NCBI RefSeq assembly: GCF_000737315.1
Contig: NZ_JMCB01000014.1
Location: 296,985-360,984, forward strand
Direction: 5' to 3'
DNA from: Hyalangium minutum
GTDB lineage: Bacteria; Myxococcota; Myxococcia; Myxococcales; Myxococcaceae
Length of the DNA: 64,000 bases
This document shows positions 9,536-40,678 of the stretch, in pieces. Position 1 is the first letter of the stretch. Each line of letters begins with the position of its first letter. The notes under the pieces are model-generated. The model was given only the letters and a program-made list of their open reading frames with translations. It searched no databases and had not been told where the DNA came from. The translations under genes were made by a program, and so were the position numbers.

Positions 9536-9937
9536 ATGCCCCGCTCCAAAGGAATGGTCATCGGCTTCTGGATCGCCACCGCGCTCTTCTGCCTGCAGAT
9601 AGGCTTCACCGCCTATGCGCAGTTGCAACTGCCGCAGGTGGCGGAGGCGTTCACCCACCTCGGCTTCCCCGCATACTTCCGGGTGGAGCTCTCGTGGGCC
9701 AAGTTCCTCGGCGTGGCGCTGCTGCTTGCACCAGTGTCGGCGCGGCTCAAGGAGTGGGCCTACGCCGGCTTCGCCATCACCCTCGTCTCCGCGCTCGTTG
9801 CCCACTTCTCGGTGGGCGATGGCCCGCAGGCGTGGGGCTGGGCAGCGGCCACCGGCGTGCTCTGGGGGCTCTCGTACTTCCTCTGGCGCCGCATCCAGGC
9901 CACGCCGGCGAGCGTGCCTGGCCGCGCGGCCGCCTGA
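9536..9937 (+). CDS. DoxX-like membrane protein
   Basis: Four hydrophobic segments; [17 protein letters not shown]. Confidence 0.85.
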
Positions 9938-12900: not shown

Positions 12901-14094
12901 GCCGCCATATCCCCCGGTGACGAGAACTCCTCCGGAAGGCAACAGGGTCGCCGTGTGAAACTCGCGCGTGGAGGCCATGGAGGTGGTGGAACTCCAGGTG
13001 CCCGTGACCGGGTCGTACACCTCCGCGCTGGCCAGGGTGCCGTCGCTGCCAATCCCCCCGGTGACGAAAACCCCTCCAGAGGGCAACAGGGTTGCCGTGT
13101 GGCCATAGCGAGCGGAGGCCATGGAGGTGGTGGAACGCCAGGTGCCTGTGGCCGGGTCGTACACCTCCGCGCTGGCCAGAGGGCTGTTGCCAAATCTCCC
13201 TCCGGTGACGAGGACCTTTCCGGAGGGCAACAGGGTCGCCGTGTGGCCATAGCGAGCGGAGGCCATGGAGGTGATGGAACTCCAGGTGCCCGTGGCCGGG
13301 TCGTACACCTCCGCGCTGGCTATAGGGCTGTTGTCGATATCTCCCCCGGTGACGAGGACTTTTCCGGAGGGCAACAGGGTCGCCGTGTGGCGACAGCGAG
13401 CAGAGGCCAAGGAGGCAGTGGAACTCCAGGTGCCTGTGGCCGGGTCGTACACCTCCGCGCTGGCCAAGCAGGAGGTGGCGTCATAGCCCCCGGTGACGAG
13501 GACCTTTCCGGAGGGCAACAGGGTCACCGTGTGGTGAGAGCGAGCAAAGGCCATGGAGGCGGTGGAATTCCAGGTGCCCGTGGCTGGGTCGTACACCTCC
13601 GCGCTGGCCAGGGTGTTGTAGACAAATCCCCCTCCGGTGACGAGGACCTTCCCGGAGGGCAATACGGTCGCCGTGTGGAACTCGCGTATGGCGGCCATGG
13701 AGGCGGTGGAACTCCAGACGCCCGTGGCCGGGTCGTACACCTCTGCGCTGGCCAGGTTGGCGATGCTGCCATATCCCCCGGTGATGAGGACTTTTCCGGA
13801 TGGTAACAGGGTCGCCGTGTGGCCATAGCGAGCGGAGGCCATATCCCCCGTGTAATTCCACTGTCCAGAGGAGAGCGCCTGTGCCTGCAGATGCCTCGGA
13901 GGCAGCACTTGACCTCCAGCCTGCGGTGCCTCACTGCAAGCAAGCCACAGCCATACCGAGGCCAGGGCAAGCCACGCCACGTGCTTCAGTTCGGAACGAG
14001 GTGAGGCGAGCAAAGCGGGCGGCCTGGAACGAGAGAGGGAACTGCGGTTGCTGCTGAAACCTGAGCCGCGGGGAGGGGAGGGAAAATCGGTCAC
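9760..14094 (-). CDS. Large surface lipoprotein: 14 Kelch repeats, galactose-oxidase-like Ig domain, about 5 bacterial Ig-like repeats, MYXO-CTERM sorting signal (true start may be GTG 13980)
   Basis: Repeat SMASAR[17 protein letters not shown]...[12 protein letters not shown]; DT-PP-AP...D-AGN Ig repeats; [25 protein letters not shown]; lipobox WLAC. Confidence 0.88.
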
Positions 14095-17188: not shown

Positions 17189-18028
17189 ATGCCCTCTCTT
17201 CGTATCGTCTCGTGGAACAGCACTGGCGAGAGCCAGCAGAAGGCCGTCGAGCTCCAGGCGGTCCAACCGGTCCTGGCCGGACTCTATCCGGCGGCCCCAG
17301 ACGTGGATGTCTTCCTGGTCCAGGAGGCCCAGCAAGCGGCGGGTGGTTCCATCTCGAGCATGCTCGATACGGACCCCGCGACGCCCGCGACGGGGGTCAG
17401 CGTCGGCCCAGCCTACCAGCGCCCGGCGGCCCACCAGCCCGAGCTGACCACGGGAGGAGGGGCTGGCCACATCTGCCTGGTGCACAACGGCGTCGTGGTG
17501 AACACGCCGCTGACCCTCTGGGACTACGCCACGGATCCCGCGCTCAACGGATGGATCGCCAGCTTGCCCGGGCATCTCCAGGCCACGGCGCAGACTGCGA
17601 CGACGCACCGGCCGCCGGCCTACGCGGTCCTCACAGTGGGTGGCTCCACGGCCATGCTGATCACCTGGCATGCGCCCTTGGGAGTACCCGCGCTGGCGCC
17701 AGGCTATACCATGCCGGGAAATGGGCTGATTGATGCCTACCTGGTGATGGAGAACAGCGGCCTGCTGCAGCAGGCCCAGGCCCAGGTGCTCGCCACGGAT
17801 GGGGTGGTGATCATCGCCGGGGATCTCAACACCACGTCCCAGGGGCTGGCCGCCAACTACCCGATCGCCACCGGCTACAACCCGCTGCCGGACTTCGTCG
17901 GCTTCAGCGACAACGTCAGCCACATCCTGGCCTGGCGGCCCAGCGGCAATGTGGTGACCGTCCAAGAGGGCCACAGCACGGACAGCTCCAGCGTGCACCG
18001 CATCATCTCGGCACGCGTCTCCTGGTGA
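17189..18028 (+). CDS. Endonuclease/exonuclease/phosphatase (DNase I-like) fold protein
   Basis: IVSWN, FLVQE, ITWHAP, IIAGDLN, terminal SVH in place of SDH; ATG 17189. Confidence 0.7.
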   Translation: MPSLRIVSWNSTGESQQKAVELQAVQPVLAGLYPAAPDVDVFLVQEAQQAAGGSISSMLDTDPATPATGVSVGPAYQRPAAHQPELTTGGGAGHICLVHNGVVVNTPLTLWDYATDPALNGWIASLPGHLQATAQTATTHRPPAYAVLTVGGSTAMLITWHAPLGVPALAPGYTMPGNGLIDAYLVMENSGLLQQAQAQVLATDGVVIIAGDLNTTSQGLAANYPIATGYNPLPDFVGFSDNVSHILAWRPSGNVVTVQEGHSTDSSSVHRIISARVSW

Positions 18029-18104: not shown

Positions 18105-19421
18105 ATGACTCACGCTCACGATCTTCCCGCTGCGGTGCAGTGGCACGAAGGGATGTTGCTCGCGCCTCAGCACTTTCAGCAGCAGGACCGCCGCCACGAG
18201 GCCCTCCTTCAGCTCCACCTCAGCCTGGCCATGCCCTTCCACTGGGGCGTGCGCCAGCTCCAGTATGATCGCTCGCTGTTGGCCGCAGGCACGCTCCAGT
18301 TGCAGGAGCTGGAGGCGGTGCTTCCGGATGGGCTCATCCTCTCCCACCGGATGGGCGAGGCGGGCGAGCTGCGGCTGGCGCTCCATGGCCTGCAGGGGGT
18401 GGACTGGCAGCGTCCCATACGCCTGCATGTCGCGGTGGCCTCCGAGAGAGGCAGCGCCCCCGGCCCCAGCCGCTTCATCTCCACCACGAGCGAGCCGCTC
18501 GCCGACGAGAGCACAGGCAGCCTGCCGCTGCGCATTGCTCAGCTCCAGCCACGGCTCGCGCTGTTCGCGGGCCCGCCTCCCGCCGGCTACTGCGCGCTCC
18601 CGCTGCTCGAGGTCCGCCGCGAGCACGAAGCCTTCGCCGTGGAGGACTACCTGCCCCCGCTGCTGACGGTGCCCTTCGACTCTCCGCTGGCGGAGGGGTG
18701 TGATCGGCTCGCCCTGCGCATCCGGCAGAAGGCCACCAGCCTGGTGGAGCAGCTCCACACCCAGGAGGCCGAGTCCGCGCAGCTCGCCGGGGGCCCGCAC
18801 CTGCTGCGCTGGCTCGTGGCCGGGCTCCCGGCCTTCGAGGCCGTGCTCCGCACGGGCACCGCCCATCCCTTCAGCCTCTACCTGGCGCTGTGCGCGCTGG
18901 CCGGACACCTCGCCCCCCTGAGCGAGGGCCGCATCCCTCCGGCCTTCCCCGCCTACGAGCACCTGGACCTCCGGCGCTCCTTCCAGGCGGTCCTCTCCTT
19001 CATCGAGAGCACGCTGGAGCAAGGCGTCTCGGAGGCCTACACCCGCGTCCAGCTCACGCCCGAGGGTGGCGGCTTCAGCACGCGCATCCTGCCCCAGTGG
19101 ACGGACCGCGAGCTGGTGCTCGAGGTGCACGGCCGGGCGGGGACGACGCGCCAGCAGGTGCTCGGGTGGATGGCGGGGTGCCGCATCGGCTCGGAGAGCC
19201 GCCACCGGGTGATGCGGGAGACGCGCACGCTCGGGGCCCGCCGCGAGCTCATCGACAGCCGGCCGGGCCTGGTGCCCCGCTCCGGCACGCTCCTGTTCTC
19301 CCTGGAGTCCAGCTCCGCCTTCATCCGCCCGGATGAGCGGCTGGTGCTCGAGAACATCCTCGAGCCGGGCGAAGTGCATGCCCCCGCCGAGGTCTTCCTG
19401 CTCATTCGCAACGACAGGTAA
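18105..19421 (+). CDS. tssK: T6SS baseplate subunit TssK
   Basis: VQWHEGMLLAPQHFQQQ, HPF-LY..L, Y-H-DL..SF. Confidence 0.92.
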   Translation: MTHAHDLPAAVQWHEGMLLAPQHFQQQDRRHEALLQLHLSLAMPFHWGVRQLQYDRSLLAAGTLQLQELEAVLPDGLILSHRMGEAGELRLALHGLQGVDWQRPIRLHVAVASERGSAPGPSRFISTTSEPLADESTGSLPLRIAQLQPRLALFAGPPPAGYCALPLLEVRREHEAFAVEDYLPPLLTVPFDSPLAEGCDRLALRIRQKATSLVEQLHTQEAESAQLAGGPHLLRWLVAGLPAFEAVLRTGTAHPFSLYLALCALAGHLAPLSEGRIPPAFPAYEHLDLRRSFQAVLSFIESTLEQGVSEAYTRVQLTPEGGGFSTRILPQWTDRELVLEVHGRAGTTRQQVLGWMAGCRIGSESRHRVMRETRTLGARRELIDSRPGLVPRSGTLLFSLESSSAFIRPDERLVLENILEPGEVHAPAEVFLLIRNDR

Positions 19422-19426
19422 ACGCC

Positions 19427-20212
19427 ATGACACACTCTGCCCTGCCCACCGGCGCCGAGGCGCTCGGAGCCTCTCCTCTTGTCTCGAGAGCCCGCGAGCT
19501 GTTCGCGGAGCTCCTTCAGCTGCGCCAGCAACTCCAGGCGCTGTCCGTCCCCAGCCGCTTCACGGCCAAGGCTCCGCCGGGCCCCAGCATCGACGAGATC
19601 TGGCGAAGGCTGCGGGAGCGCATCCAGGAGCAGACGGGCCTCGCGGGCGCTCCCCGCGGCTCGCTGCTGGAGCGCCACCTCGAGGAGTGCCGCTATGTGC
19701 TCACCTCCTTCGCCGACGAGCTGCTCGTCCACACGGAGTGGTACGGCCGGGAAGCGTGGCAGCAGCACCTGCTGGAGGATGAGCTCTTCGGCACGCACGA
19801 GGCCGGTGATCGCATCTTCGCGGACGTGGAGCGGCTGCTGCGAGAGCGGGATCCCGCGCGCGCCGAGCTCGCAGGGGTGTACCTGATGGCGCTCTCGCTG
19901 GGCTTCGAGGGCCGGTACCGAGGGCTCGGCAGCGAGGCCCTTCTCCAGGATCTGCAGCGCCAGCTCTTCGCGCTCGTCTTCCAGCGGCCGCCCGAGCCGG
20001 ACACCCGCCCCCAGCACCTGGTGGACGAGGCCTACGCCCACACCCGGGACGAGCGGACGGATCGGCGGTTCGCGCGCCGGTGGCCCTGGGCCGCGGCCAT
20101 CGCCACCGTGCTCGTGGGCGCCGTCTCCACCAGCCTGGTGCTGGCGCTCTCCCCGTCCTCGCCTCCTTCCCCCACGGCCATTTCCTCCTCTCTCCCGGAG
20201 ACGCACCCATGA
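19427..20212 (+). CDS. tssL: T6SS inner-membrane protein TssL/DotU (no OmpA domain)
   Basis: FADELL...W...LLEDELFGTHEAGDRIF...LSLGFEGRY; C-terminal TM. Confidence 0.9.
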   Translation: MTHSALPTGAEALGASPLVSRARELFAELLQLRQQLQALSVPSRFTAKAPPGPSIDEIWRRLRERIQEQTGLAGAPRGSLLERHLEECRYVLTSFADELLVHTEWYGREAWQQHLLEDELFGTHEAGDRIFADVERLLRERDPARAELAGVYLMALSLGFEGRYRGLGSEALLQDLQRQLFALVFQRPPEPDTRPQHLVDEAYAHTRDERTDRRFARRWPWAAAIATVLVGAVSTSLVLALSPSSPPSPTAISSSLPETHP

Positions 20213-21465
20213 GCGCACCTTCCACCTCTCTCCACACGGCGCTGCAACGGCTGGGCGCCACCGGCAAGCACCGCGAGCGCCGCTACCAGGTGCCCTGGCT
20301 GATGCTCGTGGGCGAGCCGGGCTCGGGCCGCACCTCGCTGGCGGCGGGTGCCCACCTGCGCCGCCCCTATGGCTCTCCTACGCGCAAGGAGCTGGAGGCC
20401 GGCGGCTGGGGCGTCTGGCTCTTCGACCAGGGCGTGGTGCTCGACATGCCCGGCCTCACGGAGCAACCCACGCCAGAGTGGCAGGACGCCCTCCGGAGCC
20501 TGAAGCAGCTCCGGGGCCAGCGGCCCGTGGACGGGCTGATGCTGACGGTGCCCGCCTCGCGCCTGACGGGCCCGCAGGCCCTGGATGACGTGGGGCTGGA
20601 GCGCATGGCGCAGGGCCTCTTCGAGAGACTGCAAGCCCTGCGCAGCGAGCTGGGCGTGCGCGCGCCCGTGTATGTCGTCATCACCCAGTCGGATCTGATC
20701 CCCGGCTTCGCCGCCTTCTGCCGCACCCTGCCGCCGCACAGGCGGGACGAGATGCTCGGCTGGTCCAGCCCCGCCTCGCCCCAGGAGCCCTACTCTCCCG
20801 CCTGGGTGGACACGGCCTTCCAGGTCATCCACCAAGAGCTCTGCGCCCTCCAGCTCGAGCTGCTCGCAGCGGGGCAAGGAGCGCAGGCGGACCGGGAGTC
20901 CGCGTTCCTCTTCCCCTCCGAGCTGCGCGCGCTCGCGCGGCCGGTGAGCCGGCTGCTCGACGTCCTCTTCCAATCCTCCACCTTCGCCCAGCCGGCCCTG
21001 CTGCGAGGGATCTACTTCTGCGGCGACCCCGTGCCGCAAGGCGCCGCCGGGCTGGGTGGGGCTCCTCGCACGCCCGCTTTCATCACCCACCTGCTGGAGC
21101 GCAAGGCCTTCCCCGAGAGCGGCTTGGCCAGCCCGGATGCCGAGGCCGCGCGCCGCAACCGGAGGGGTGTGGGCCTGCTGCAGGGCGCGCTCGCCGTCTG
21201 CGTGCTGCTGGCGGCGCTCGTGCTGGGCCTGCTGTGGAAGAGCACGCGTGCTCCTAAGCCGCTCCCGGAACCGCCCCCCGCAGTCACTGTGGCAAGCCCC
21301 CCTGAAGTCTCCGAGCCGCCCCCACCGCAGAAGCCGGCTCAAGCCCGGCGCCGCCCAGGCCGCACGCTCGGCAAGGCCCTCGCCTTCGACGACGCCCCTC
21401 CGCCCCAGCCGATCCGCAACGGCGCCTCGACCTTCGATGACGCGCCCCCTCCTCCCACCCATTGA
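20209..21465 (+). CDS. tssM: Short TssM/IcmF-like protein (cytoplasmic NTPase-like domain, one TM, Pro-rich tail)
   Basis: PWLMLVGEPGSGRTS, DMPG, PVDGLML, PVYVVITQSDLIPGF, LRGIYFCG; about 418 aa. Confidence 0.85.
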   Translation: MSAPSTSLHTALQRLGATGKHRERRYQVPWLMLVGEPGSGRTSLAAGAHLRRPYGSPTRKELEAGGWGVWLFDQGVVLDMPGLTEQPTPEWQDALRSLKQLRGQRPVDGLMLTVPASRLTGPQALDDVGLERMAQGLFERLQALRSELGVRAPVYVVITQSDLIPGFAAFCRTLPPHRRDEMLGWSSPASPQEPYSPAWVDTAFQVIHQELCALQLELLAAGQGAQADRESAFLFPSELRALARPVSRLLDVLFQSSTFAQPALLRGIYFCGDPVPQGAAGLGGAPRTPAFITHLLERKAFPESGLASPDAEAARRNRRGVGLLQGALAVCVLLAALVLGLLWKSTRAPKPLPEPPPAVTVASPPEVSEPPPPQKPAQARRRPGRTLGKALAFDDAPPPQPIRNGASTFDDAPPPPTH

Positions 21466-21481
21466 GCCCCGAGCCTCCGCC

Positions 21482-22585
21482 ATGGCCGACGTTCTCCCCT
21501 CTCCTGCACCGGACCTCGAGCCGCTCCTGCGGCCGATCTCTCCCGAAGCGCCCTCGGGCCGCAGCCTGCGCTATGAGCCCCTCTACGATCAGCTCCGGGA
21601 GGCCCGGCGCGAGGATGACCCCACGCTGCCCCAAGGCGTGTGGCAGGCCCCCCTCAAGCGGGCCAACTGGGCCCAAGTGGTGGAGCTCTGCCAGCACGCG
21701 CTGACGCGCGACTCGAAGGATCTGCAGCTGGCCGCATGGCTCACGGAGGCCTGGGGGTTTCAGCAGGGCTTCGCGGGGCTGGCGCGCGGGCTGTGGCTGA
21801 CCCGCGCGCTGGTGGAGCGCTTCTGGGACTCGCTCTGGCCCGCTCTCGAGGAGGGGGACGCGGAGGCCCGGCTCGCCCCTTTGACGTGGCTCGATGACAG
21901 GCTCCCCACGGTCCTCGGCCAGGTCCCGCTCGTCCGAACCCAGGGCCCCAACGCCGTGAGCCACGGCTTCGCGGATTGGCAGCAGATCCTCCACCAGGAG
22001 AAGCGCGGCGGAGCCCCGAAGGCCGCGTCCGATGAGGAGGAAGAGGCCGACAGCGCCGAGGAAGGCCCGCTGACGCGGGAGCGCTTCCTGGACATCGCCT
22101 CCCAGATGCCGGCCGTGGGCCTTGGCACGCTCGCGCGGGAGATGGACGCCTTGCTGAAGGCCAGCTCCGCGCTGGAACAGGCACTCGACGCCAAGCTGGG
22201 GCGCGCCAGCGCGCTGCTGCGCCGCACCCGCGAGGTCCTCGGAGGCCTCCAGGCCCTGGCCACCACGCTGCGCGCCAGCTCCGCGAAGGAGGAACCAGGG
22301 GCGGTGGCGGGCACCCCGGCGGATGGAGAATCTCCCGAGCTCCCTACGGGCCCGGGGACGAACCCGCGCGCCATCCGCAGCCGGGAAGAGGCCTACCAAT
22401 GGCTGAGCCTCGCCTCGGACTACCTGCGGCGCACCGAGCCACACAGCCCCGTCCCCTACCTGGTCAAGCGCGCCGTGCTCTGGGGGCAGTTGCCTCTCGA
22501 GCAGCTCCTCCAGGAGCTGATCCCCAACGCCTCCCACCTGGAGGCCATCCACTCCCTGCTCGGAATGAAGCTGGAGAAGAAGTGA
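21482..22585 (+). CDS. tssA: T6SS TssA (ImpA family)
   Basis: LL-PIS..P.G..LRY, SKDLQLAAWL, EPHSPVPYLVKRA..WG. Confidence 0.92.
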   Translation: MADVLPSPAPDLEPLLRPISPEAPSGRSLRYEPLYDQLREARREDDPTLPQGVWQAPLKRANWAQVVELCQHALTRDSKDLQLAAWLTEAWGFQQGFAGLARGLWLTRALVERFWDSLWPALEEGDAEARLAPLTWLDDRLPTVLGQVPLVRTQGPNAVSHGFADWQQILHQEKRGGAPKAASDEEEEADSAEEGPLTRERFLDIASQMPAVGLGTLAREMDALLKASSALEQALDAKLGRASALLRRTREVLGGLQALATTLRASSAKEEPGAVAGTPADGESPELPTGPGTNPRAIRSREEAYQWLSLASDYLRRTEPHSPVPYLVKRAVLWGQLPLEQLLQELIPNASHLEAIHSLLGMKLEKK

Positions 22586-22591
22586 GGCGAC

Positions 22592-23056
22592 ATGTCCCGA
22601 GACAACCAGACCTCCGGATTCGCGGCGCCCCTGCTGGACAGGCTCACGGACACAGAGAGCGTGTCCTGGCTCGATGAAGAACAGCTGCGCGCCTCGGTGA
22701 GGCGCGAGGTGGCGCACGCGTTGAGCACCCGCTGCACGCTCACCTTGGAGCAGGCCGGCGCGCTCGAGCCTCATGAGCGCTCGGCCCTGGACTATGGGCT
22801 ACCGGACCTGCGGCCACTCGGGACAACCGCCGCCGAGGCCCTGCACCTGGAGCGGCTCATCGCCCATGCGGTCGAGGCCTACGAGCCACGCCTGCGGCAG
22901 ATCCAGGTCTCCGTCCAGCTTCCTCCCGAGGAGGAGGGCTCCCCCGTCGCGCTGATCACCGCCCGGCTGGTTCAGAGCCCAATCAACGAGTCCATCTCCC
23001 TCCCGCTGCGGCTGGACCGGAGCGGGAGGCTGGTGGAGGTGGAGCACGAGCGCTGA
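22592..23056 (+). CDS. tssE: T6SS baseplate TssE (gp25-like)
   Basis: LLDRL, LDYGLPD, YEPRL. Confidence 0.88.
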   Translation: MSRDNQTSGFAAPLLDRLTDTESVSWLDEEQLRASVRREVAHALSTRCTLTLEQAGALEPHERSALDYGLPDLRPLGTTAAEALHLERLIAHAVEAYEPRLRQIQVSVQLPPEEEGSPVALITARLVQSPINESISLPLRLDRSGRLVEVEHER

Positions 23057-23117
23057 TCACATCCGGCGGCGCCCGGCTCCATCCCACGAACCCCAACCCT
23101 CTCGAAGGAGAGACGAC

Positions 23118-23627
23118 ATGCCCGCGAAGGAAAGCACTCAACACATCCTGACCCGGATCCGGCCCCCTCGGGTGCAGATCACCTACGACGTGGAGATCGG
23201 TGACGCGGTGGAGCAGAAGGAGCTGCCGCTGGTGGTCGGCATCCTGGCGGATCTGGCAGGGCAGCAGCAGGAGCTCCCGCGGCTGAAGGAACGCAAGTTC
23301 GTCGAGATCGACCGCGACAACTTCGACGAGGTGATGGCCGCCACCGGGCCGAGGCTGCGGCTGTCCGTGCCGGACAAGCTCCGCGAGGACGGCGGCAGCA
23401 TGGCCGTGGAGCTGCGATTCCAAAGCATGGACTCGTTCCACCCGCGCCAGCTCGTCGAGCAGATCGAGCCGCTGCGCAAGCTCCTGGAGTCGCGCCAGCG
23501 GCTGGTGGACCTGCTGGCCAAGCTGGACGGCAACGACGCGCTGGCGGAGCTGCTGCGGTCCGTGCTGGCGGACAAGTCCCGCCTCCAGGCGCTCGAGGCC
23601 GAGCTGAAGGCTCCCACGGAGCACTGA
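23118..23627 (+). CDS. tssB: T6SS sheath small subunit TssB
   Basis: RPPRVQITYDVE, KELPLVVGILAD, F.SMDSFHP. Confidence 0.95.
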   Translation: MPAKESTQHILTRIRPPRVQITYDVEIGDAVEQKELPLVVGILADLAGQQQELPRLKERKFVEIDRDNFDEVMAATGPRLRLSVPDKLREDGGSMAVELRFQSMDSFHPRQLVEQIEPLRKLLESRQRLVDLLAKLDGNDALAELLRSVLADKSRLQALEAELKAPTEH

Positions 23628-23667
23628 CCCCTGAAGCCCAACCCCCAAACCTGAAACGGAGGAAGTG

Positions 23668-25176
23668 ATGTTCGAGGAAGGCACGCAAGAAGCCACGCAG
23701 GAACCCCCGCGGCAGCAACAGACGCAGACCCTGCAGCCAGAGCAAGGGCTGCTCACGCGCATCATCGAGGAGGGCCGGCTGGCGCGAGAGGACGGCCAGC
23801 AGCCTCGCGCCCGGGAGCTGGTGGGCGAGTTCGTGGAGCAGGCCCTCACCCAAGACTCCGTCTCGCCCGAGGCGGATCTGGTGGCGCTCATCCACCAGCG
23901 CATCGCGCGCATCGACGAGCTGCTGGGCGCGCAGCTGGACGAGGTGCTCCACGCCGAGCCCTTCCAGCGGCTGGAGGCCTCGTGGCGGGGCCTGCACCTG
24001 ATGGTCCACGACACGGAGACGGGGACAAACCTGAAGCTCCGGGTGCTCCACGCCACGAAGAAGGAGCTGCTTGAGGATCTGGAGCGGGCACCCGAGTTCG
24101 ATCAGAGCGCCCTCTTCAAGAAGCTCTACGAGGAGGAGTACGGCACCTTCGGCGGGCAGCCATACGGGGTCCTCCTCGGCGACTACGAGTTCGGCCGGAG
24201 CCCGCGGGACGTGGCGCTGCTGGAAGGAATCTCCCACGTGGCCGCCGCCGCGCACGCGCCCTTCATCTCCGCGGCCAGTCCCTCGCTGTTCGATCTGGAC
24301 AGCTTCACGGACATCGGGGCGCCGAGGGATCTGGCGCGCACCTTCGAGAGCACGGAGCTCATCCGCTACCGCAGCTTCCGGGACTCGGAGGACGCGCGGT
24401 ACGTGGGGCTGGTGCTGCCCCACGTGCTGATGCGGTTGCCCTACGGCGAGGACACGGCGCCGGTGGAGGGCTTCGGCTACCGCGAGGACGTGGACGGTCG
24501 CGATCACCACAAGTACCTGTGGGGCAACGCGGCCTATGCGCTGGGCCTGCGCATCACCCACGCCTTCGCGCAGTACCAGTGGTGCGCCAACATCCGCGGG
24601 GTAGAGAGCGGCGGCATCGTCCAGGGGCTGCCCACGCACACCTTCCGCACGGACGAGGGAGACATCGCCCAGAAGTGCCCCACGGAGGTGGCCATCACCG
24701 ACCGGCGCGAAAAGGAGCTCAGCGATCTGGGCTTCATCACCCTGTGCCACAGCAAGGGCACCGACTACGCGGCCTTCTTCGGCGCGCAGACGGCCCACAA
24801 GCCCCGCCGCTACGACACGCCCCAGGCCAACGCCAACGCGGAGCTGTCCTCGCAGCTGCCGTACATCCTGGCCTCGTCGCGCTTCGCGCACTACCTCAAG
24901 GTCATCATGCGCGACAAGGTGGGCGGCTTCGCTTCCAGCCAGGAAATCTCCGCCTTCCTCAACCGGTGGATCAGCCAGTACGTGCAGACCAACGAGAACG
25001 CCTCCTTCTCCATCAAGGCCCGCCAGCCGCTGCGCGAGGCCCGGGTGGACGTGGCCGAGGTCCCTGGCCACCCTGGCACGTACCGGGCGGTGGTGTTCCT
25101 GCGCCCCCACTTCCAGCTCAACGAGCTGACCGCCTCGATCCGCCTGGTGGCGGAGCTGCCCCAGCCGGCCGCATGA
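23668..25176 (+). CDS. tssC: T6SS sheath large subunit TssC
   Basis: FQRLEASWRGL, YEEEYGTFGG, AAAAHAPF, YLWGNAA, LPYI, RPHFQL. Confidence 0.97.
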   Translation: MFEEGTQEATQEPPRQQQTQTLQPEQGLLTRIIEEGRLAREDGQQPRARELVGEFVEQALTQDSVSPEADLVALIHQRIARIDELLGAQLDEVLHAEPFQRLEASWRGLHLMVHDTETGTNLKLRVLHATKKELLEDLERAPEFDQSALFKKLYEEEYGTFGGQPYGVLLGDYEFGRSPRDVALLEGISHVAAAAHAPFISAASPSLFDLDSFTDIGAPRDLARTFESTELIRYRSFRDSEDARYVGLVLPHVLMRLPYGEDTAPVEGFGYREDVDGRDHHKYLWGNAAYALGLRITHAFAQYQWCANIRGVESGGIVQGLPTHTFRTDEGDIAQKCPTEVAITDRREKELSDLGFITLCHSKGTDYAAFFGAQTAHKPRRYDTPQANANAELSSQLPYILASSRFAHYLKVIMRDKVGGFASSQEISAFLNRWISQYVQTNENASFSIKARQPLREARVDVAEVPGHPGTYRAVVFLRPHFQLNELTASIRLVAELPQPAA

Positions 25177-25241
25177 GGCGGGCCCACCCCCACTCGTCAC
25201 ATCTCATCCCTTCACCCCTCTCTCACGCGAGGCCATAGACC

Positions 25242-25700
25242 ATGCCAGAAAGCATTTATCTGAAGATCGCCAAGGCGCCGGGCAGCTCCAAGGTGCAGGC
25301 TTATTCGGGCCAGATCGAAGTCCTCTCCTACCGCTACGGGCTGACCTTCCCCATGACGCTCAATGAGCGCTCCAACGATGGGGAGATCAAGCGCCAGGGA
25401 CGTCCCAACCACGGAGAGTTCCAGATCACCAAGTTGGTGGATAAGGCCTCCCCCAACCTCTACCTGTCCTGCAGCAAAGGCGAGAGCGTGGGCAACGCCA
25501 CCCTCACCGTCGCCGGCAGCGATGACAGCGTCATCTTCACGTACGAGCTGACCGAAGTCGTCATCACGTCGATCTCCGTCGCGGGAGGCGCCCGGGGAGA
25601 CCCCGTCGAGACGGTGTCGCTCGACTACGCGACCATCGAGTGGAAAGAGGGCGCGAGCAACTCGACGAAGTGGGATCGCAAGACCAACAAGACGGCCTGA
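25242..25700 (+). CDS. hcp: Hcp tube protein (TssD)
   Basis: YLKI..G.S, IEVLSY, ITKLVDKASPNL, ETVSLDYA.IEW. Confidence 0.92.
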   Translation: MPESIYLKIAKAPGSSKVQAYSGQIEVLSYRYGLTFPMTLNERSNDGEIKRQGRPNHGEFQITKLVDKASPNLYLSCSKGESVGNATLTVAGSDDSVIFTYELTEVVITSISVAGGARGDPVETVSLDYATIEWKEGASNSTKWDRKTNKTA

Positions 25701-25721
25701 GCCAGCGGACGGAGGAGCGCG

Positions 25722-27539
25722 ATGGGCACCCAACAGGATGAACTGCTCCAGGCCTACCAGCGGGAACTGGCCTGGCTGCGCGGGGAAGGGGCGGAGTTCG
25801 CCGCCCACTACCCCAAGCTGGCCGCGAGGCTGCGTTTAGGAGCGAGCGAGGTGGGCGATCCCCACGTGGAGCGCCTCATCGAGTCGTTCGCATTCCTCAC
25901 CGCGCGCGTCCAGCACGCCTTCGACAGCGATCTGCCGGAGCTCTCCACCACACTGCTGGGCCTGCTGGCCCCTCACCTGGTGGAGCCCCTGCCCTCGCTG
26001 TCCATCGCCTGCTTCGAGGTGGATACGGCGGCGGGCCTGCCCCTCGCGGGCCACCGCATCGAGCGCGGCACGCAGCTGCTGGCCGAGCCGCGCCCGGGGC
26101 AGACCTGCCGCTTCCGCACCTGCTCACCGGTGACCCTCTGGCCGCTGAAGGTGGCGGAAGCGAGCCTGGAGTCCCCGCTCTCCTTCAGCTGGCTGCGCAC
26201 GCGGCGGGACGTGTCCGCGGTGCTGCGGCTCCGGCTGGAGGCGCGCGGAGCCCAGCTGGCGGAGCTGCAGCTGGACCGGCTCCAGTTCTTCCTCGACGGC
26301 CCTCCCGAGGTGGCCTTCCGCCTCTACGAGCTGCTCACCTGCCAGGCCCGAGGCGTGGCGCTTGCGCCGGACAGCGCACCGGATGAGCCTCACCTCCAGC
26401 CCATGGACAGCCTGCGTCAGCTCGGCTTCGGCCCCGAGGAGGCAGTGCTGCCCTCCCCTCCGCACCTGCACCGCGGCTACCGCCTGCTGCAGGAGTACTT
26501 CGCCTTCCCCGAGAAGTTCCTCTTCTTCGAGCTGGCGCTGGAGCGCGCGTGCCTCCAGGCCTCCCAGCAAGCGCTCGAGGTCTACGTGCTGCTGGAAGGC
26601 GCGCCCAGCGAGGGCCTCGCGCTCACGCCCGAGACGTTCCGGCTGGGCTGCACCCCCATCATCAACCTCTTCCCCAAGCTGGCCGAGCCCGTCCGGCTGG
26701 ATCAGCGCCGCACCGAGTATCCGCTGGTGCCCGACTACCGCCGCCCGAGGGAGCTGGAGCTCCACTCCATCCTCTCGGTCACCGCTGCCACGGAGGGAGC
26801 CGGGAGCACGAGGGAAGTCGATCCCCTCTTCTCCTGGAGCCACGGGGAGGACGGAGAGGAGCCGCGCGCCTTCTGGTACACCCGGCGCCAGCCCACCGGC
26901 CGAGCGGGGGGACAGGGCTCGCAGGTGCTGCTGTCCTTCGTGGATCTGGAGCTCGATCCCCACCTGCCCGCGGAGCAGACGCTGCACGTGCACACGCTGT
27001 GCACCAACGGGGAGCTGCCCGTGCAGTTGGCGCCCGGCTCGGCGCTGCAGGTGGAGGAGCGGGTCCCCGTGGGCGCCATCCGCTGCCTGCGCCGCCCCAC
27101 GCCTCCCCGCGAGCCTCCGGACAAGGGCCCCGTGCTGTGGCAGCTCGTCTCGTTGCTGTCGTTGAACCACCTCTCGCTCGCCACCGGCCCGCGGGCGCTG
27201 GAGGCGCTCGAGGAGCTGCTGCGGCTGCATGACTGCTCCGGCGGCCAGGTGTCCGTGCAGCAACTCCAGGGGCTGACAGGGCTGGAGAGCCGCCCGGTGG
27301 TGCGCCAGCGAGGCTGGGAGGCCTGGCGAGGCTTCTGCCGGGGCCTGGAGATCACCCTCACCTTCGACGAGTCCCGCTACGTGGGCGGCAGCGCCCTGCT
27401 GCTCGCGGCGGTGCTCCACCACTTCCTCGGCCTGTACGCCCCGGTGGATTCCTTTACCCAGCTCGTCGCGAGGAGCGAGCAGCGGGAGGACACATGGAAG
27501 CGATGGCCCCCCATGGCCGGCGACGCGCCCCTGGTGTAG
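25722..27539 (+). CDS. tssF: T6SS baseplate TssF
   Basis: YQRELAWLR, DPHVERLIESFAFL, YRLLQEYFAFPEKF, LGCTPIINLF, LSLNHLSL. Confidence 0.96.
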   Translation: MGTQQDELLQAYQRELAWLRGEGAEFAAHYPKLAARLRLGASEVGDPHVERLIESFAFLTARVQHAFDSDLPELSTTLLGLLAPHLVEPLPSLSIACFEVDTAAGLPLAGHRIERGTQLLAEPRPGQTCRFRTCSPVTLWPLKVAEASLESPLSFSWLRTRRDVSAVLRLRLEARGAQLAELQLDRLQFFLDGPPEVAFRLYELLTCQARGVALAPDSAPDEPHLQPMDSLRQLGFGPEEAVLPSPPHLHRGYRLLQEYFAFPEKFLFFELALERACLQASQQALEVYVLLEGAPSEGLALTPETFRLGCTPIINLFPKLAEPVRLDQRRTEYPLVPDYRRPRELELHSILSVTAATEGAGSTREVDPLFSWSHGEDGEEPRAFWYTRRQPTGRAGGQGSQVLLSFVDLELDPHLPAEQTLHVHTLCTNGELPVQLAPGSALQVEERVPVGAIRCLRRPTPPREPPDKGPVLWQLVSLLSLNHLSLATGPRALEALEELLRLHDCSGGQVSVQQLQGLTGLESRPVVRQRGWEAWRGFCRGLEITLTFDESRYVGGSALLLAAVLHHFLGLYAPVDSFTQLVARSEQREDTWKRWPPMAGDAPLV

Positions 27540-28513
27540 CGCAGGAGCTCTTCGAGTCCGGCCACCGCTTCGACTTCTTCCAGGCGATGCGCCTGCTGCG
27601 GCGGCTGCGCCCCGAGGCACCGGTGCGCCTGCGCTCCTCGGGAGACATGGCCTTTCCCCCCAGCGACATCGTCCAGGTGAAGCCACCCGCGCGGCCGGGA
27701 GAGGCGCCGGAGCTGACGGTGGCCTTCCTCGGGCTGGGCGGGGTGCAGGGGCCGCTGCCGAGGCCCTTCGCCCAACAGCTCCGGGACCGGACGCGCGCGG
27801 GGGACACGGGGCTGCGCGACTTCCTGGACATCTTCCACCACCGGCTGCTGTCGCTGCTGTACCAGGGGCGGGTGCTGCGCCGGGTGTGGCTGGAGCCGGG
27901 CCCGCCTGAGGCCCACGCCGTGGCCCGCTACCTGTACGCGTGGATGGGGCTGGGCACCCGGGGGACGCGAGGACGGCTGGAAGTCGAAGATCGCATGCTG
28001 CTGCGCTACGCGGGGCTGCTCGCGCACCGGCCCGTGTCCCTGGAAGCGCTGCGGGCCCTGATCTCGGACGCGCTGAGCGTGGGGGTGAGGCCGAGAGCGC
28101 CCCAGGGTGCGTGGCTGCCGCTGGAGGCGGAGCAGTGGACGCGGCTGGGCCTCACCGGCGGCAACCAGCGGCTCGGCCAGGACGCGGTGCTGGGCACGCG
28201 CGCGTGGCTGGAGCAGGCGGGTGTGGAGCTGGAGCTGGGGCCTCTCTCGTGGCGCCGCTACGTGGAGCTGCTGCCGGGGAGCCGGGGCCTGGGCACCCTG
28301 CGCTCGCTCACCCGGTTCGCGCTGGGTCCGGGCCTCGAGGTGCGGCTGGTGCTGTCCGTGCGCGCCGCGGAGATCCCCGCGCAGCCCCTAAGCGCTCCGA
28401 GCGGCCCACGCCTGGGGTGGACTTCCTGGCTGCGCGCCAGCCCCGGCCGACAGGGAGTCCAGACGGTGGCGCTCGCACCCCATCACCTGGCCGCACACGA
28501 GGAGGGACCATGA
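27503..28513 (+). CDS. tssG: T6SS baseplate TssG
   Basis: FDFFQAMRLL, FLGL.G.QGPLP, DFLDIFHHRLL, LG..A.LG. Confidence 0.93.
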   Translation: MAPHGRRRAPGVAQELFESGHRFDFFQAMRLLRRLRPEAPVRLRSSGDMAFPPSDIVQVKPPARPGEAPELTVAFLGLGGVQGPLPRPFAQQLRDRTRAGDTGLRDFLDIFHHRLLSLLYQGRVLRRVWLEPGPPEAHAVARYLYAWMGLGTRGTRGRLEVEDRMLLRYAGLLAHRPVSLEALRALISDALSVGVRPRAPQGAWLPLEAEQWTRLGLTGGNQRLGQDAVLGTRAWLEQAGVELELGPLSWRRYVELLPGSRGLGTLRSLTRFALGPGLEVRLVLSVRAAEIPAQPLSAPSGPRLGWTSWLRASPGRQGVQTVALAPHHLAAHEEGP

Positions 28514-30360
28514 GGTCGGGATTCACGCAGGATCAGGTTTATCTCTCCGTCACCACGCCGATGGGCAAGGACGTGCTGCGGCTGCACGGCTTCCAGGGCG
28601 AGGAGGCCTTATCGCAGCCCTTCCACTTCACCCTGGAGCTGCACTCCGAGCGGCTCGACGTGGACTTCTCGCGGCTGGTGGGCCAGGGCGCGGCCATCTC
28701 CCTGGTGCTGCGCGACGGTACCGAGCGGTGCTTCCATGGACTCGTCACCCGCTTCGTCCAGGCCGGCACCTTCTCGGACTTCACCCGGTACATCGCCGAG
28801 CTGCGCCCCTGGCTGTGGCTGCTCACGCTCACCCGCGACAGCCGCATCTTCCAGAACCTGACGGTGCCGGAGCTCCTCCAGCAGCTCTTCCGGGAGCAGG
28901 GCTTCAGCGACTTCCGGCTGGCGCTGCGGCGCAGCTACACCCCTCGCGAGTACTGCGTGCAGCACCAGGAGTCCGCGTTCGACTTCGCCTCGCGGCTCAT
29001 GGAGGACGAGGGCATCTTCTACTTCTTCGAGCACACGAAGGACCGGCACACGCTGGTGCTAGCGGACGATGCGGCGGCCCATCTGCCCTGCCCGGGGCCG
29101 GGGGTGGCCCGCGTGCAGGGCCATCAAGGCGCGGCGCGGACGGACGATGCCGTGACGGGGTGCCAGATGGAACAGCAGGTGGTGCCCGGGCGCTACGCGT
29201 TGGGGGACTACTCCTTCCAGACGCCCTCGACGCGGCTCCAGGCGCGGGTGAGCGGCCCGGAGGCGCGCCTCGAGCAGTACGAGTACCCGGGGACCTTCAC
29301 CCGCCAGGACCAGGGCGAGCAGCGCGGCCGCATCCGCCTGGAGGCCCACGAGGTGCAGTCCCGGGCGCTGCGAGGCCAGAGCCACGTGCGTTGGTTCATC
29401 CCCGGCTACCGCTTCACCCTCGCCGAGCACGAGCGCAAGGACATCAATGCGGAGTACGTGCTGCGCTGGGTGTCCCACGCGGCCACGGTGGAGGGGTACA
29501 CCAACAGCTTCGAGGCCTTCCCGGCTGCCACGCCCTTCCGTCCGCCCCGAGTGACGCCCCGGCCGATGGCCACCGGCGTGCAGAGCGCCCGCGTGGTGGG
29601 CAAGGCGGGTGAGGAGATCTGGACGGATCAGTTTGGCCGGGTGAAGGTCCAGTTCCACTGGGATCGCCAGGGCCGGAAGGACGAGCGCAGCTCGTGCTGG
29701 ATCCGGGTGGCGCAGGGCCAGGCCGGCAAGGGCTGGGGGAACTTCTTCCTGCCCCACGTGGGCCAGGAGGTGCTGGTCACCTTCCTGGATGGAGATCCGG
29801 ATCGGCCCATCATCACCGGCTCCGTCTACAACGCCGAGCAGCAGGTGCCGTACCCGCTGCCTGCGGGGCAAACGCGGAGCACGGTGCGCGGCGATGCCTC
29901 GGGCGAGGGCCCGCCCAATGAGCTGTCCTTCGAGGACAAGAAGGGGGCGGAGGAGCTCGCCCTGCACGCCCGCCGGGACATGAAAGTCTCGGTGCAGCGC
30001 GACAGCGTGACGGAGATCCAGGGCAACTGCACGATCCGGGTGCGGGGCAACCTCACCCTGGACGTCCGGGGCTCCATCAACCTCAAGGCGGGGAGGAACT
30101 TCACCCAGCGGGCGGGGATGTCGCTCACGAGCCTGGCTGGGACGAACCTGACGCAGAAGGCCCAGCTCGTGCTGGAGAGCTCGGCGGGGACGATGATGCG
30201 GCACACGTCCGGCCTGGCGATGCTGGCCGACGCCCAGACGATGGTCACCAACGCCCGGCTCGTGCACATGCTCAAGGCAACGCCGCTCATCATCCAGGGG
30301 CCGATGATCATGCAGCCCATGGGGGGGCCGCCGCTCCCACCGATGCCGCCCACAGGCTGA
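28510..30360 (+). CDS. vgrG: VgrG spike protein (TssI), about 616 aa
   Basis: EALSQPF, REYCVQHQESAFDF..RLMEDEGIFY, GRVKVQFHWD, WIRVAQ, FLDGDPDRP; ATGA overlap with tssG. Confidence 0.95.
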   Translation: MRSGFTQDQVYLSVTTPMGKDVLRLHGFQGEEALSQPFHFTLELHSERLDVDFSRLVGQGAAISLVLRDGTERCFHGLVTRFVQAGTFSDFTRYIAELRPWLWLLTLTRDSRIFQNLTVPELLQQLFREQGFSDFRLALRRSYTPREYCVQHQESAFDFASRLMEDEGIFYFFEHTKDRHTLVLADDAAAHLPCPGPGVARVQGHQGAARTDDAVTGCQMEQQVVPGRYALGDYSFQTPSTRLQARVSGPEARLEQYEYPGTFTRQDQGEQRGRIRLEAHEVQSRALRGQSHVRWFIPGYRFTLAEHERKDINAEYVLRWVSHAATVEGYTNSFEAFPAATPFRPPRVTPRPMATGVQSARVVGKAGEEIWTDQFGRVKVQFHWDRQGRKDERSSCWIRVAQGQAGKGWGNFFLPHVGQEVLVTFLDGDPDRPIITGSVYNAEQQVPYPLPAGQTRSTVRGDASGEGPPNELSFEDKKGAEELALHARRDMKVSVQRDSVTEIQGNCTIRVRGNLTLDVRGSINLKAGRNFTQRAGMSLTSLAGTNLTQKAQLVLESSAGTMMRHTSGLAMLADAQTMVTNARLVHMLKATPLIIQGPMIMQPMGGPPLPPMPPTG

Positions 30361-30393
30361 GCGCACCACCACGAAGACAACGGGGGGAGAACC

Positions 30394-30954
30394 ATGCCGA
30401 GGGAATACACGGAGACGGACGAGCGGGCGCGGGTGCGCGAGCGCTTCACCCTGGATGACGAGGGGCGGCTGGAGGGCGTGGCCACCACCTATGACGAAGC
30501 GGGCCGGCGCATCCAGGAGTCGACCTGGCACGCGGGCACGCTGCACGGTCCCACGATCCACTACGGCCCGGACGGTCAGGTGGTGCAGCGGGTGACGTTC
30601 GTTTCAGGCCAGCTCAAGGGACCGGCGGAGCTTCAAGGCGAAGAGGGGCGCCTCCGTCTCCAGTTGGGCTTCCACGAGGGCCGGCTGCATGGCGAGCTGC
30701 ACGCTTGGCAGGACGGCCAGCCCTTGATGAAGCACACCCTGGCAGAGGGCACCCCCGAGGGTCCGCTCGAGCTCTACGAGGCAGGCCGGCTCACCCGCCG
30801 GGTGCTCTTCCAGCAGGGACATCCTCTTGAGGAGAACACAGGGCCACATGAACAGCAGGCCCCTGGGGCCACGCCTGAGGAGAAAGCAGCCCCGGACCGC
30901 GCGCCCCTCTCCTCCTGGCTGCAGGGCTGGCTCCAGGGGAGCCACGGCACCTGA
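30394..30954 (+). CDS. MORN-variant repeat protein (YwqK-like)
   Basis: Repeated G.LEG/G.LHG...Y/W..G motifs. Confidence 0.75.
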   Translation: MPREYTETDERARVRERFTLDDEGRLEGVATTYDEAGRRIQESTWHAGTLHGPTIHYGPDGQVVQRVTFVSGQLKGPAELQGEEGRLRLQLGFHEGRLHGELHAWQDGQPLMKHTLAEGTPEGPLELYEAGRLTRRVLFQQGHPLEENTGPHEQQAPGATPEEKAAPDRAPLSSWLQGWLQGSHGT

Positions 30955-31024: not shown

Positions 31025-31534
31025 ATGCGCCGGATGCTGTCCCTGGCAATGATTGCCGCCGTGACTTGGGGCTCGAGTGCGCTGGCGCGCGCCGAGCCCA
31101 CCCCTCTCGCTATCACCCGCAAGGACAGCCCCCAGGTGCTGACGCTGGGCGGCGGGCCCGAGGGAAAGGACGGAGCGGCGATCCTGCTGTCCCCCAACAA
31201 GGCCCTGCCCGGCCAGAACTTCTCGCTCAAGCCGGTGGGCAAGCCTGAGGATCAGACGTTCAACATCGTCTCCCAGCAGAGCCCATGGTGCGTCGACGTC
31301 GAGCGAGGGAGCACCGAGGACGGTGCCGCGATCGTCCAGAAGCCATGCAACGGCGCGACGTGCCAGGTGTTCCGGGTGAGCGACCGGGGCGCCGATGGCC
31401 ACCGCGAGCTCCGCAATGAGCTCAGCGGCAAGTGCCTGTCGGCGCCGCAGAGCAAGGACTCCGGGCTGATCCAGGCCACGTGCACCGGTAAGGACGAGCA
31501 ACGCTTCCGCATCAGCCCCCAGCGCGACGGCTGA
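31025..31534 (+). CDS. Secreted ricin-B (RICIN) lectin-domain protein
   Basis: Signal peptide; CVDV, QKPCNGATCQVF, SGKCL, QRF; ATG 31025. Confidence 0.8.
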   Translation: MRRMLSLAMIAAVTWGSSALARAEPTPLAITRKDSPQVLTLGGGPEGKDGAAILLSPNKALPGQNFSLKPVGKPEDQTFNIVSQQSPWCVDVERGSTEDGAAIVQKPCNGATCQVFRVSDRGADGHRELRNELSGKCLSAPQSKDSGLIQATCTGKDEQRFRISPQRDG

Positions 31535-40667: not shown

Positions 40668-40678
40668 GCGGGGCGGTT

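Follow-up and report, generated by a model that had tools for sequence, protein, structure and literature searches.

A conserved type VI secretion gene cluster with a shortened TssM in Hyalangium minutum and related Archangiaceae

The myxobacterium Hyalangium minutum has a type VI secretion system (T6SS) gene cluster in which the cytoplasmic contractile machine is complete, with TssA, TssB, TssC, TssE, TssF, TssG, TssK, Hcp and VgrG all present, and in which TssM is reduced to 418 residues. The cluster lies in a 64-kb stretch of contig JMCB01000014.1 (assembly GCA_000737315.1), called the window here. The TssJ-TssL-TssM complex is held to be essential for, and a defining feature of, the proteobacterial-type T6SS, and to anchor the machine there and provide a gated passage through the periplasm and the outer membrane. 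The short TssM consists of the cytoplasmic domain, one transmembrane (TM) helix and a disordered tail. We hold, with moderate confidence, that the cluster is a vertically inherited, selectively maintained, reduced T6SS-i of the Archangiaceae, which is functional and docked to the inner membrane only.

Organization of the gene cluster

Twelve tightly packed genes on the plus strand, at 18105-30954 of the window, encode tssK-L-M-A-E-B-C-hcp-F-G-vgrG and a MORN-like protein (Table 1). Gene identities were taken from Pfam and NCBIfam, and nearly all core proteins score above the curated NCBIfam equivalog cut-offs. TssE, TssF, TssG, TssK and TssA all do so, which identifies the baseplate and the TssA of a T6SS-i. 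Both subunits of the contractile sheath, TssB and TssC, are also above their cut-offs, while the Hcp tube and the VgrG spike are recognized by PF05638 and TIGR03361, respectively. TssL, the anchor in the inner membrane, is borderline, with a score of 89.8 against a TIGR03349 cut-off of 89.95. It has one C-terminal TM segment (residues 223-241 in a TM scan) followed by a 20-residue tail, and Pfam finds in it the DotU family alone and no peptidoglycan-binding domain. By its sheath, tube, spike, baseplate, TssA and TssL, the cluster is a T6SS-i; it departs from that class in that it has neither a full-length TssM nor, within the window, TssJ or ClpV.

The reading frames of tssL and tssM overlap by ATGA, and 16 bp separate the stop codon of tssM from the ATG of tssA. 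The tssG and vgrG frames also overlap by ATGA, so that there is no room for clpV between them. A first-pass annotation of this DNA had described an intact, tightly coupled cluster, with these junctions on either side of tssM, no decayed remainder of that gene and a TssL devoid of a peptidoglycan-binding domain. The family searches and a direct reading of the junctions bear this out, the match of the MORN-like protein being weak, and a hidden Markov model (HMM) search finds no remnant.

Absences of T6SS parts were judged within the window, by its six-frame open reading frames (ORFs). No ClpV- or ClpB-like ORF is found there by BLASTP, and none is homologous by HMM to the lipoprotein that adjoins tssK in related loci. 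The T6SS-SciN family has no match among the window ORFs that were scanned, and no DUF4280 PAAR-like ORF is present in the 64 kb. The other ORFs scanned are unrelated to T6SS and encode glycoside hydrolases, lectins, a chemoreceptor, histidine kinases and others. The earlier statement that the cluster has no tssJ, clpV or PAAR gene thus stands. For PAAR, however, its weight is reduced by the eight PAAR genes that the H. minutum genome contains, together with nine vgrG genes (PMC8651086, Data Set S1), and by the DUF4280 PAAR-like gene that directly follows vgrG in sister loci.

Structure of the short TssM

The N-terminal part of TssM matches PF14331, the IcmF N-terminal (nucleoside triphosphatase (NTPase)-like) domain, with an E-value of 4.6e-51 over positions 5-251 of 259. 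Against TIGR03348, which represents full-length TssM, the protein scores 166 bits where the cut-off is 388, and the match extends over positions 89-450 of 1168. The cytoplasmic IcmF N-domain occupies residues 1 to about 315, a single TM helix follows at residues 321-339, and the remainder is a disordered, proline-rich periplasmic tail. No N-terminal TM segment is found in a hydropathy scan of TssM, and the in-frame extension upstream of its start is hydrophilic and overlaps tssL. The single helix aligns with the second TM segment of the long TssMs (alignment A2) and, on sequence grounds, is equivalent to TM3 of canonical TssM. The first-pass annotation had read these features correctly: a protein of about 418 residues with an IcmF N-domain, the motif GEPGSGRT, no N-terminal TM segments, one TM helix and two FDDAPPP copies. 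NCBI labels some of the short TssMs 'IcmF/TssM N-terminal domain-containing protein'.

An AlphaFold2 model of TssM, built with 18 homologues, has an alpha/beta core, a long helix (residues 309-346) and a disordered C-terminal segment (residues 347-418), at a mean predicted local distance difference test (pLDDT) score of 63. Foldseek returns no match to this model below 1e-3 and only vague resemblances to P-loop GTPases, and sequence searches of the PDB with single short or long TssMs as queries give nothing significant.

The Walker A motif of H. minutum TssM, GEPGSGRT, departs from the canonical GxxxxGK[ST]. All 21 members of the short-TssM clade have GxxxxGRT, and throughout the ClpV-less myxobacterial clade this position is Arg or Gln; in relatives that contain ClpV it is Lys. 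The motif is fully degenerate (for example, GDPLLGER) in the long TssMs of three loci from Pseudomonas and Citrobacter (L011, L021 and L031). Its loss is therefore not restricted to the short-TssM clade.

A local HMM of the TssM periplasmic domain has no match in any of the six frames of the window, nor in any Archangiaceae locus. The idea of a split gene, in which the periplasmic half would be encoded separately, was also examined and rejected. A probe made from the periplasmic region of the metagenome locus L087, whose TssM is the nearest of the long ones, matched only itself, and a separate fragment was found in no Archangiaceae. This negative is weak because the word index is insensitive and the periplasmic domain evolves fast.

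Distribution and selective constraint

A homology search with the short TssM gives 21 close relatives of 409-542 residues and 54-81% identity. They come from Archangium (four named species), Cystobacter (two), Hyalangium versicolor, Melittangium boletus, Vitiosangium and soil metagenomes. The loci of Archangium gephyra, A. violaceum, A. minus, M. boletus, H. versicolor, Vitiosangium and the metagenome contig L090 were read directly, and every one of these seven (six named myxobacteria and L090) has the order K-L-M(short)-A-...-F-G-vgrG, with tssG abutting vgrG. In Archangium, the cluster occupies the same place on the chromosome, adjoining rtcR/rtcBA. The search for the same gene order with a short tssM, which the first-pass annotation had proposed, thus finds it in at least five genera and in metagenomes.

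When a profile of the clade is run exhaustively with HMMER against 1.84 billion representative proteins, it finds just two clusters of genuine short forms, which score 694 and 651 bits. A 1040-residue protein at 460 bits ranks next, followed by thousands of TssMs of 1150-1550 residues. Other short matches (P0148, P0167, P0229 and similar ones) were rejected, their ends having the look of frameshift junk or contig truncation. A 433-residue TssM ORF of Tunturiibacter (L007) was rejected as well; tssK and tssF are also split in that locus and 2.9 kb of unassigned DNA follows.

Three core functions of the H. minutum cluster are missing or truncated, and rearrangements do exist among its relatives, where tssE has moved and where Vitiosangium has had its tssKLM replaced with fragments left behind. 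These are the marks that a decaying, non-functional T6SS remnant would bear. Such decay is nevertheless very improbable in view of the constraint on the genes. All 12 ORFs are intact in H. minutum and in at least seven other genomes across five genera, the ATGA translational coupling is kept, and the ratio of non-synonymous to synonymous substitution rates (dN/dS; Nei-Gojobori method, H. minutum against H. versicolor) is 0.13-0.33 for all eleven core genes. TssM itself has a dN/dS of 0.27, with 0.25 for the N-domain, 0.17 for the TM helix and 0.32 for the tail, and is no more relaxed than TssK, TssL or TssA. These ratios are, if anything, overestimates because the GC content at third codon positions (GC3), near 90%, compresses dS. 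Vitiosangium, moreover, keeps a complete second tssKLM beside the old fragments, which argues that the module is needed.

In Vitiosangium sp. GDMCC 1.1324 (L002), the fragments, of tssK (208 residues, 82% identical) and of tssM (78 residues), lie upstream of tssA at 6476-7151. A complete, inverted tssK-L-M of the Melittangium type, with a lectin/LysM TssM, is located downstream of the MORN-like gene at 18444-21487. From this arrangement, the docking module looks to have been replaced by recombination.

Some variations are found elsewhere in these clusters. TssB and TssC are fused in one ORF, with no stop between them, in two ClpV-less myxobacterial loci: M. boletus CP022163 (L084, 12686-14737, 651 residues) and Corallococcus sp. 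BB11-1 (L086, 6677-8968, 763 residues). A 191-residue gene with no family match lies between tssE and tssB in H. versicolor (L091, 12901-13476) and in Vitiosangium (L002, 8784-9356), the two copies being 63% identical. The suggestion that the H. versicolor copy is a relocated MORN-like gene was rejected, as it is a different and unrelated gene.

Phylogeny and stepwise reduction of TssM

A total of 91 related T6SS loci (numbered in the form L001) were compared, with clpV scored by BLASTP and the tssK-adjacent lipoprotein by HMM. In a neighbour-joining tree based on TssB, TssC, TssF and TssG (100 bootstraps), the short-TssM clade is monophyletic with a bootstrap value of 100. Its sister, with support of 100, is the metagenome locus L087 (P0144), which has a TssM of 1044 residues. 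This protein retains the helical part of the periplasmic region, corresponding to positions 19-655 of a 925-position periplasmic profile, and ends just before the LAGRFPF region. The next branch out contains L086 of Corallococcus sp. BB11-1, with a complete TssM of 1364 residues, and L088 (support 100), and is followed by L005 (support 100). The intermediate loci were supplied by a TssF homology search, of which the best 120 matches, reaching down to about 49% identity, were used. The whole of this larger clade, from the short-TssM members to L005, is without clpV. The tssK-adjacent lipoprotein is missing from L087 and the short-TssM clade, the ClpV-less loci in which the region upstream of tssK is visible.

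Among the matches listed in a TssC search of genome contigs, the nearest sheath relatives are from Pseudomonas, beta-proteobacteria, Acidobacteria, Nitrospirota and other phyla, with TssC 59-70% identical. TssM has 1200-1500 residues in nearly all of those that show the region. The long TssMs share two C-terminal motifs, LAGRFPF and LRWAKDAP, and their profile weakly matches the C-terminal crystal fragments of enteroaggregative Escherichia coli (EAEC) TssM, 4Y7M and 4Y7L (E=0.009 and 0.05). Because of the shared motifs and these weak matches, homology of the C-terminal part of the long TssMs to that of canonical TssM is suggested. We infer from the order of branching that TssM first lost its C-terminal domain, and then the whole periplasmic domain together with the N-terminal TM hairpin. 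The first domain to go would correspond to the one that, in E. coli, contacts TssJ and makes up the tip at the outer membrane. The losses of clpV and of the lipoprotein, which may have come earlier, are given no fixed order relative to these truncations. The first-pass annotation had allowed for a recent deletion from close relatives with a long tssM; since the short form is one clade of at least five genera and is under purifying selection, it is no recent deletion.

ClpV and the tssK-adjacent lipoprotein

In 60 of the 91 loci, clpV is located between tssG and vgrG, and most of the loci outside the short-TssM clade and its ClpV-less relatives carry it there when this interval is covered. A lipobox lipoprotein of about 150 residues adjoins tssK in 52 loci, and most of the outside loci with the tssK region covered have one. 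It occupies the position of TssJ, with the lipobox L-[AS]-[GA]-C (alignment A3), in L004, L007, L008, L010, L012, L016, L017 and L019 and in about 44 Pseudomonas-type loci. Neither Pfam (including T6SS-SciN), NCBIfam nor PDB sequence searches recognize this family, and the periplasmic half of the long TssMs of the subfamily goes unrecognized by Pfam and NCBIfam. Automated surveys may therefore under-call tssJ and mis-score tssM in this subfamily.

Loci without clpV in the region covered are also found outside the myxobacteria: in L005, a metagenome-assembled genome of Pseudomonadota, and in L008, L012 and L013, from Acidobacteria and Nitrospirales. In L005 and L008, tssG abuts vgrG, whereas L012 has a toxin gene separating the two and L013 has them side by side on the opposite strand. 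L007, in which no clpV is seen either, has the look of a frameshifted locus. Within the subfamily, clusters without clpV may be widespread.

Comparison with other contractile systems

The cluster shares with the canonical T6SS-i, represented by EAEC Sci-1 and M. xanthus MXAN_4800-4813, all parts of the cytoplasmic core, TssL, and the cytoplasmic domain and last TM segment of TssM. It differs in its TssM, from which the N-terminal TM hairpin and the entire periplasmic part, some 700 residues, are missing, and in that neither the cluster nor the window has tssJ or clpV. The sister clusters L086 and L087 are closer. They have the order K-L-M-A-B-C-hcp-E-F-G-vgrG-(MORN)-(DUF4280), are without clpV, and have the Walker A Lys replaced by Arg or Gln, but they keep a periplasmic region in TssM, which is complete in L086 and of which L087 has the helical part only.

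Further loci resembling the H3-T6SS are found in Pseudomonas and other Proteobacteria, Acidobacteria and Nitrospirota. This putative subtype label (group 4B/i4b) follows from a likeness to the gene order of P. aeruginosa H3. In addition to the similarity of TssC given above, TssB is 50-66% identical, a MORN-like gene follows vgrG, and the blocks J-K-L-M-A and B-C-hcp-E-F-G are common to both. The nearest TssC relatives are organized as (A-M-L-K-lipoprotein)|(B-C-hcp-E-F-G-clpV-vgrG). Unlike the H. minutum cluster, these loci have a TssM of 1200-1500 residues, a lipoprotein gene adjoining tssK, and a clpV that separates tssG from vgrG.

T6SS-i systems with no recognizable TssJ that keep ClpV and a full-length TssM with its periplasmic domain occur in Acinetobacter and Agrobacterium; for group 5 of Agrobacterium, the absence of TssJ is given in PMC5813230. 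The T6SS-ii of Francisella has PdpB, a long member of the IcmF family, the outer-membrane lipoprotein IglE and very divergent core proteins. It resembles the H. minutum system in having no ClpV in the cluster (PMC5813230). The T6SS-iii of Bacteroidota and the T6SS-iv of Amoebophilus, with the cytoplasmic contractile injection systems, have no proteobacterial TssJ-TssM trans-envelope channel (PMC10781749, PMC6450956, PMC5813230), and the Amoebophilus system is also without ClpV (PMC5813230). These systems, in contrast, have no TssL or TssM at all, and T6SS-iii uses TssN/O/P/Q/R instead. Since TssK, TssL and the N-domain of TssM are present and conserved, the H. minutum system is not a T6SS-iii or T6SS-iv, nor an extracellular contractile injection system. 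Full-text literature searches and the supplements of a 2026 T6SS survey yielded no T6SS-i in which TssL is retained and TssM has its cytoplasmic half but not the periplasmic one. The form is unusual and conserved. What the first-pass annotation had called a candidate new T6SS architecture is better described as a derived, reduced variant of a T6SS-i lineage.

The periplasmic tail of TssM

The tail has roughly 70-100 residues across the clade and is barely alignable apart from its copies of (F/W)DDAPPP. This type of motif is present in one to three copies in 16 of the 18 short TssMs without a lectin tail, and the two FDDAPPP copies of H. minutum are 16 residues apart. In Melittangium and Vitiosangium, the motifs are replaced by a B_lectin-like region and a LysM domain (8.7e-10 in Melittangium), and a related metagenome protein shows the former but not the latter. 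As LysM binds peptidoglycan, its occurrence in the tail places the tail in the periplasm. This composition suggests that the tail serves to tether the protein to the cell wall, and the (F/W)DDAPPP motif may do the same through a partner.

A secreted Ricin-type lectin is encoded downstream of the cluster in H. minutum (Table 1). It has orthologues downstream of the cluster in A. gephyra, A. minus and A. violaceum (L082/L083 at about 20854, L003 at 18958-19578 and L085 at 20744-21301). No such gene is found near the cluster in Melittangium and Vitiosangium, in which the TssM tail has the lectin and LysM domains, or in H. versicolor and L090. Because it is missing in the latter two, any link to the T6SS is suggestive, and the lectin may be part of the system or simply a gene next door.

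Proposed mode of action

If the cluster is a working system of the inner membrane, as we favour, the short TssM and TssL would form a dock in that membrane for the TssK/F/G/E baseplate. Contraction of the sheath would then drive Hcp and VgrG through the peptidoglycan and the outer membrane without a preformed TssJ-TssM channel. The (F/W)DDAPPP repeats would attach this dock to the wall or to some periplasmic or outer-membrane partner, a role that the lectin and LysM domains would take over in Melittangium and Vitiosangium. Recycling of contracted sheaths would fall to ClpB or another general unfoldase, or to a ClpV whose gene lies outside the cluster. ClpB recycles the sheath in Francisella, and single use, as the first-pass annotation had proposed, does not follow from a missing clpV. 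The wider suggestion of that annotation, that the contractile system is attached to the inner membrane alone, is a hypothesis, and the best supported of those considered here.

That the system is armed is supported by the eight PAAR and nine vgrG genes of the genome, by the DUF4280 PAAR-like genes of the sister loci, and by the gene that heads the operon, directly upstream of tssK, which encodes a divergent protein of the endonuclease/exonuclease/phosphatase (EEP) fold. In the Pseudomonas locus L054, the gene immediately preceding vgrG (19001-19894) encodes a 43%-identical homologue of this protein, which scores 30.8 bits against PF03372, above the cut-off. The EEP-fold gene is not kept beside the cluster in other Archangiaceae, and no immunity gene for it was identified. 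The 279-residue protein is a candidate T6SS effector or cargo.

Several points weigh against a functional system confined to the inner membrane. We know of no precedent among T6SS-i for firing through the cell's own outer membrane without a channel. The system is known here from its genes, and its firing and Hcp secretion are predictions. The dN/dS values are inflated or uncertain at a GC3 of about 90%, and what they show is constraint, not secretion. The AlphaFold2 model of TssM is of moderate confidence (pLDDT 63). Finally, a canonical cluster like that of M. xanthus may coexist in the genome and could be the one that uses the orphan vgrG and PAAR genes.

A more specific proposal is put forward tentatively, as possible rather than probable. 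In it, this T6SS-i lineage would have no trans-envelope channel of any kind. An NTPase-dead, tail-anchored stump of TssM would hold the baseplate together with TssL, (F/W)DDAPPP or the lectin and LysM domains would hook the dock to the wall or to a non-homologous outer-membrane component, and the tube would breach the cell's own envelope with each shot.

The cluster might instead not be self-sufficient, borrowing its envelope-spanning and recycling parts from a second, canonical T6SS with a long TssM, TssJ and ClpV, or using a non-homologous conduit recruited through the (F/W)DDAPPP tail. M. xanthus, of the sister family, has a canonical 13-gene cluster with tssJ (MXAN_4801) and clpV (MXAN_4813) (PMC5801462), the H. 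minutum genome has the supply of vgrG and PAAR genes noted above (PMC8651086), and paralogues abound in these genomes of 10-13 Mb. The tail motif, being short, linear, conserved and set in a disordered periplasmic segment, also looks like a docking site for a partner. The retained N-terminal helix of TssC, GLLTRIIEEGRLAR in H. minutum, with the pattern LLxRIIxEGRxAR in an N-terminal alignment, would point the same way as the putative equivalent of the ClpV-binding helix of V. cholerae VipB. This helix is conserved in ClpV-plus and ClpV-minus loci alike and therefore says little either way. Against borrowing, contacts among TssK, TssL and TssM are normally system-specific, no conserved gene of unknown function accompanies the cluster across genera, and the L087 periplasmic probe, in a search that is insensitive, gave no separate fragment in any Archangiaceae. 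Absence of clpV, furthermore, extends well beyond the short-TssM loci, to a much larger clade in which other phyla are represented. On this evidence, we consider a dependent cluster unlikely.

A third possibility is that the cluster now encodes a contractile device that is non-secreting or coupled to lysis. Anchored at the inner membrane on its cytoplasmic side, the device would act inside the producer or only after lysis, as reported for cytoplasmic contractile injection systems. The missing channel, the missing clpV (a single firing would suffice) and the degenerate Walker A motif are all compatible with it, and myxobacteria undergo programmed lysis during development. The docking module of TssK, TssL and TssM has, however, been kept under purifying selection, and the acquisition of LysM and lectin domains by the periplasmic tail in some lineages points to engagement with the envelope. 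The DUF4280 gene after vgrG in sister loci and the linked candidate effectors are typical of a delivery system, and such a device appears improbable.

Accessory and neighbouring genes

The VgrG of the cluster has a short, proline-rich C terminus without a toxin extension. The MORN-like protein encoded after it has homologues that match MORN-type families more strongly than the H. minutum copy does. BLASTP gives 94 alignments, several per locus, to ORFs that follow vgrG, including those of Pseudomonas, beta-proteobacteria and Corallococcus. Since no such gene follows vgrG in L085, L090 and L091, it is a dispensable accessory.

Elsewhere in the window, an ORF of about 1440 residues from stop to stop (1382 in the source record), at 9760-14094 on the minus strand, has about ten Kelch repeats and five bacterial Ig-like domains. 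A DUF2381 protein (2e-77) is encoded at 40679-41623 on the minus strand, and an HNH endonuclease at 42039-42407 on the plus strand, in a stretch lower in GC (about 62-64% against about 67-71%). The ORFs at 37808-40685 have no family match. A respiratory operon extends over 42881-55757 on the plus strand and encodes a multihaem cytochrome c, alternative complex III (molybdopterin-like/iron-sulphur, NrfD-like, ActD and cytochrome c), SCO1, and cytochrome c oxidase II, I and IV.

Table 1. Positions in the window of the T6SS genes, of features of TssM and of two adjacent genes
Feature	Position	Strand	Supporting match or method
EEP-fold protein, 279 aa, divergent, directly upstream of tssK	17189..18028	+	PF03372 E=0.009, below cut-off
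tssK (baseplate), 438 aa	18105..19421	+	PF05936 4e-49; TIGR03353 236 bits, cut-off 100
tssL (DotU), 261 aa	19427..20212	+	PF09850 1.7e-30, sole Pfam family matched
tssM (short), 418 aa	20209..21465	+	PF14331 only; TIGR03348 positions 89-450 of 1168
TssM single TM helix, residues 321-339	21169..21225	+	Hydropathy scan
Two FDDAPPP motifs in the Pro-rich TssM tail, residues 393-399 and 409-415	21385..21453	+	
tssA, 367 aa	21482..22585	+	PF06812; TIGR03363 301 bits, cut-off 161
tssE (gp25-like), 154 aa	22592..23056	+	PF04965; TIGR03357
tssB (small sheath subunit), 169 aa	23118..23627	+	PF05591; TIGR03358 190 bits, above cut-off
tssC (large sheath subunit), 502 aa	23668..25176	+	PF05943 and PF18945; TIGR03355 697 bits, above cut-off
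hcp (tssD), 152 aa	25242..25700	+	PF05638 1.5e-29
tssF, 605 aa	25722..27539	+	PF05947 4e-202
tssG, 339 aa	27494..28513	+	PF06996
vgrG (tssI), 616 aa	28510..30360	+	PF05954, PF04717, PF22178; TIGR03361 606 bits
MORN-repeat-like protein, 186 aa, no signal peptide	30394..30954	+	MORN_2 E=0.0015, below Pfam cut-off
Secreted Ricin-type lectin, 169 aa, Sec signal peptide	31025..31534	+	PF14200 and PF00652

Implications

The short-TssM clade is a natural, conserved lineage that has dropped the passage through the periplasm and outer membrane and kept the rest of the machine under selection. The stepwise series of TssMs of 1364, 1044 and about 420 residues would be ready material for dissecting the roles of the TssM domains. 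How the machine gets through the envelope is directly testable, as A. gephyra, M. boletus and C. fuscus are culturable carriers with complete genomes. Should the system fire, the TssJ-TssM conduit is dispensable for T6SS-i function; should it rely on a partner brought in through the (F/W)DDAPPP tail, such a partner would represent a novel kind of envelope component for a T6SS.

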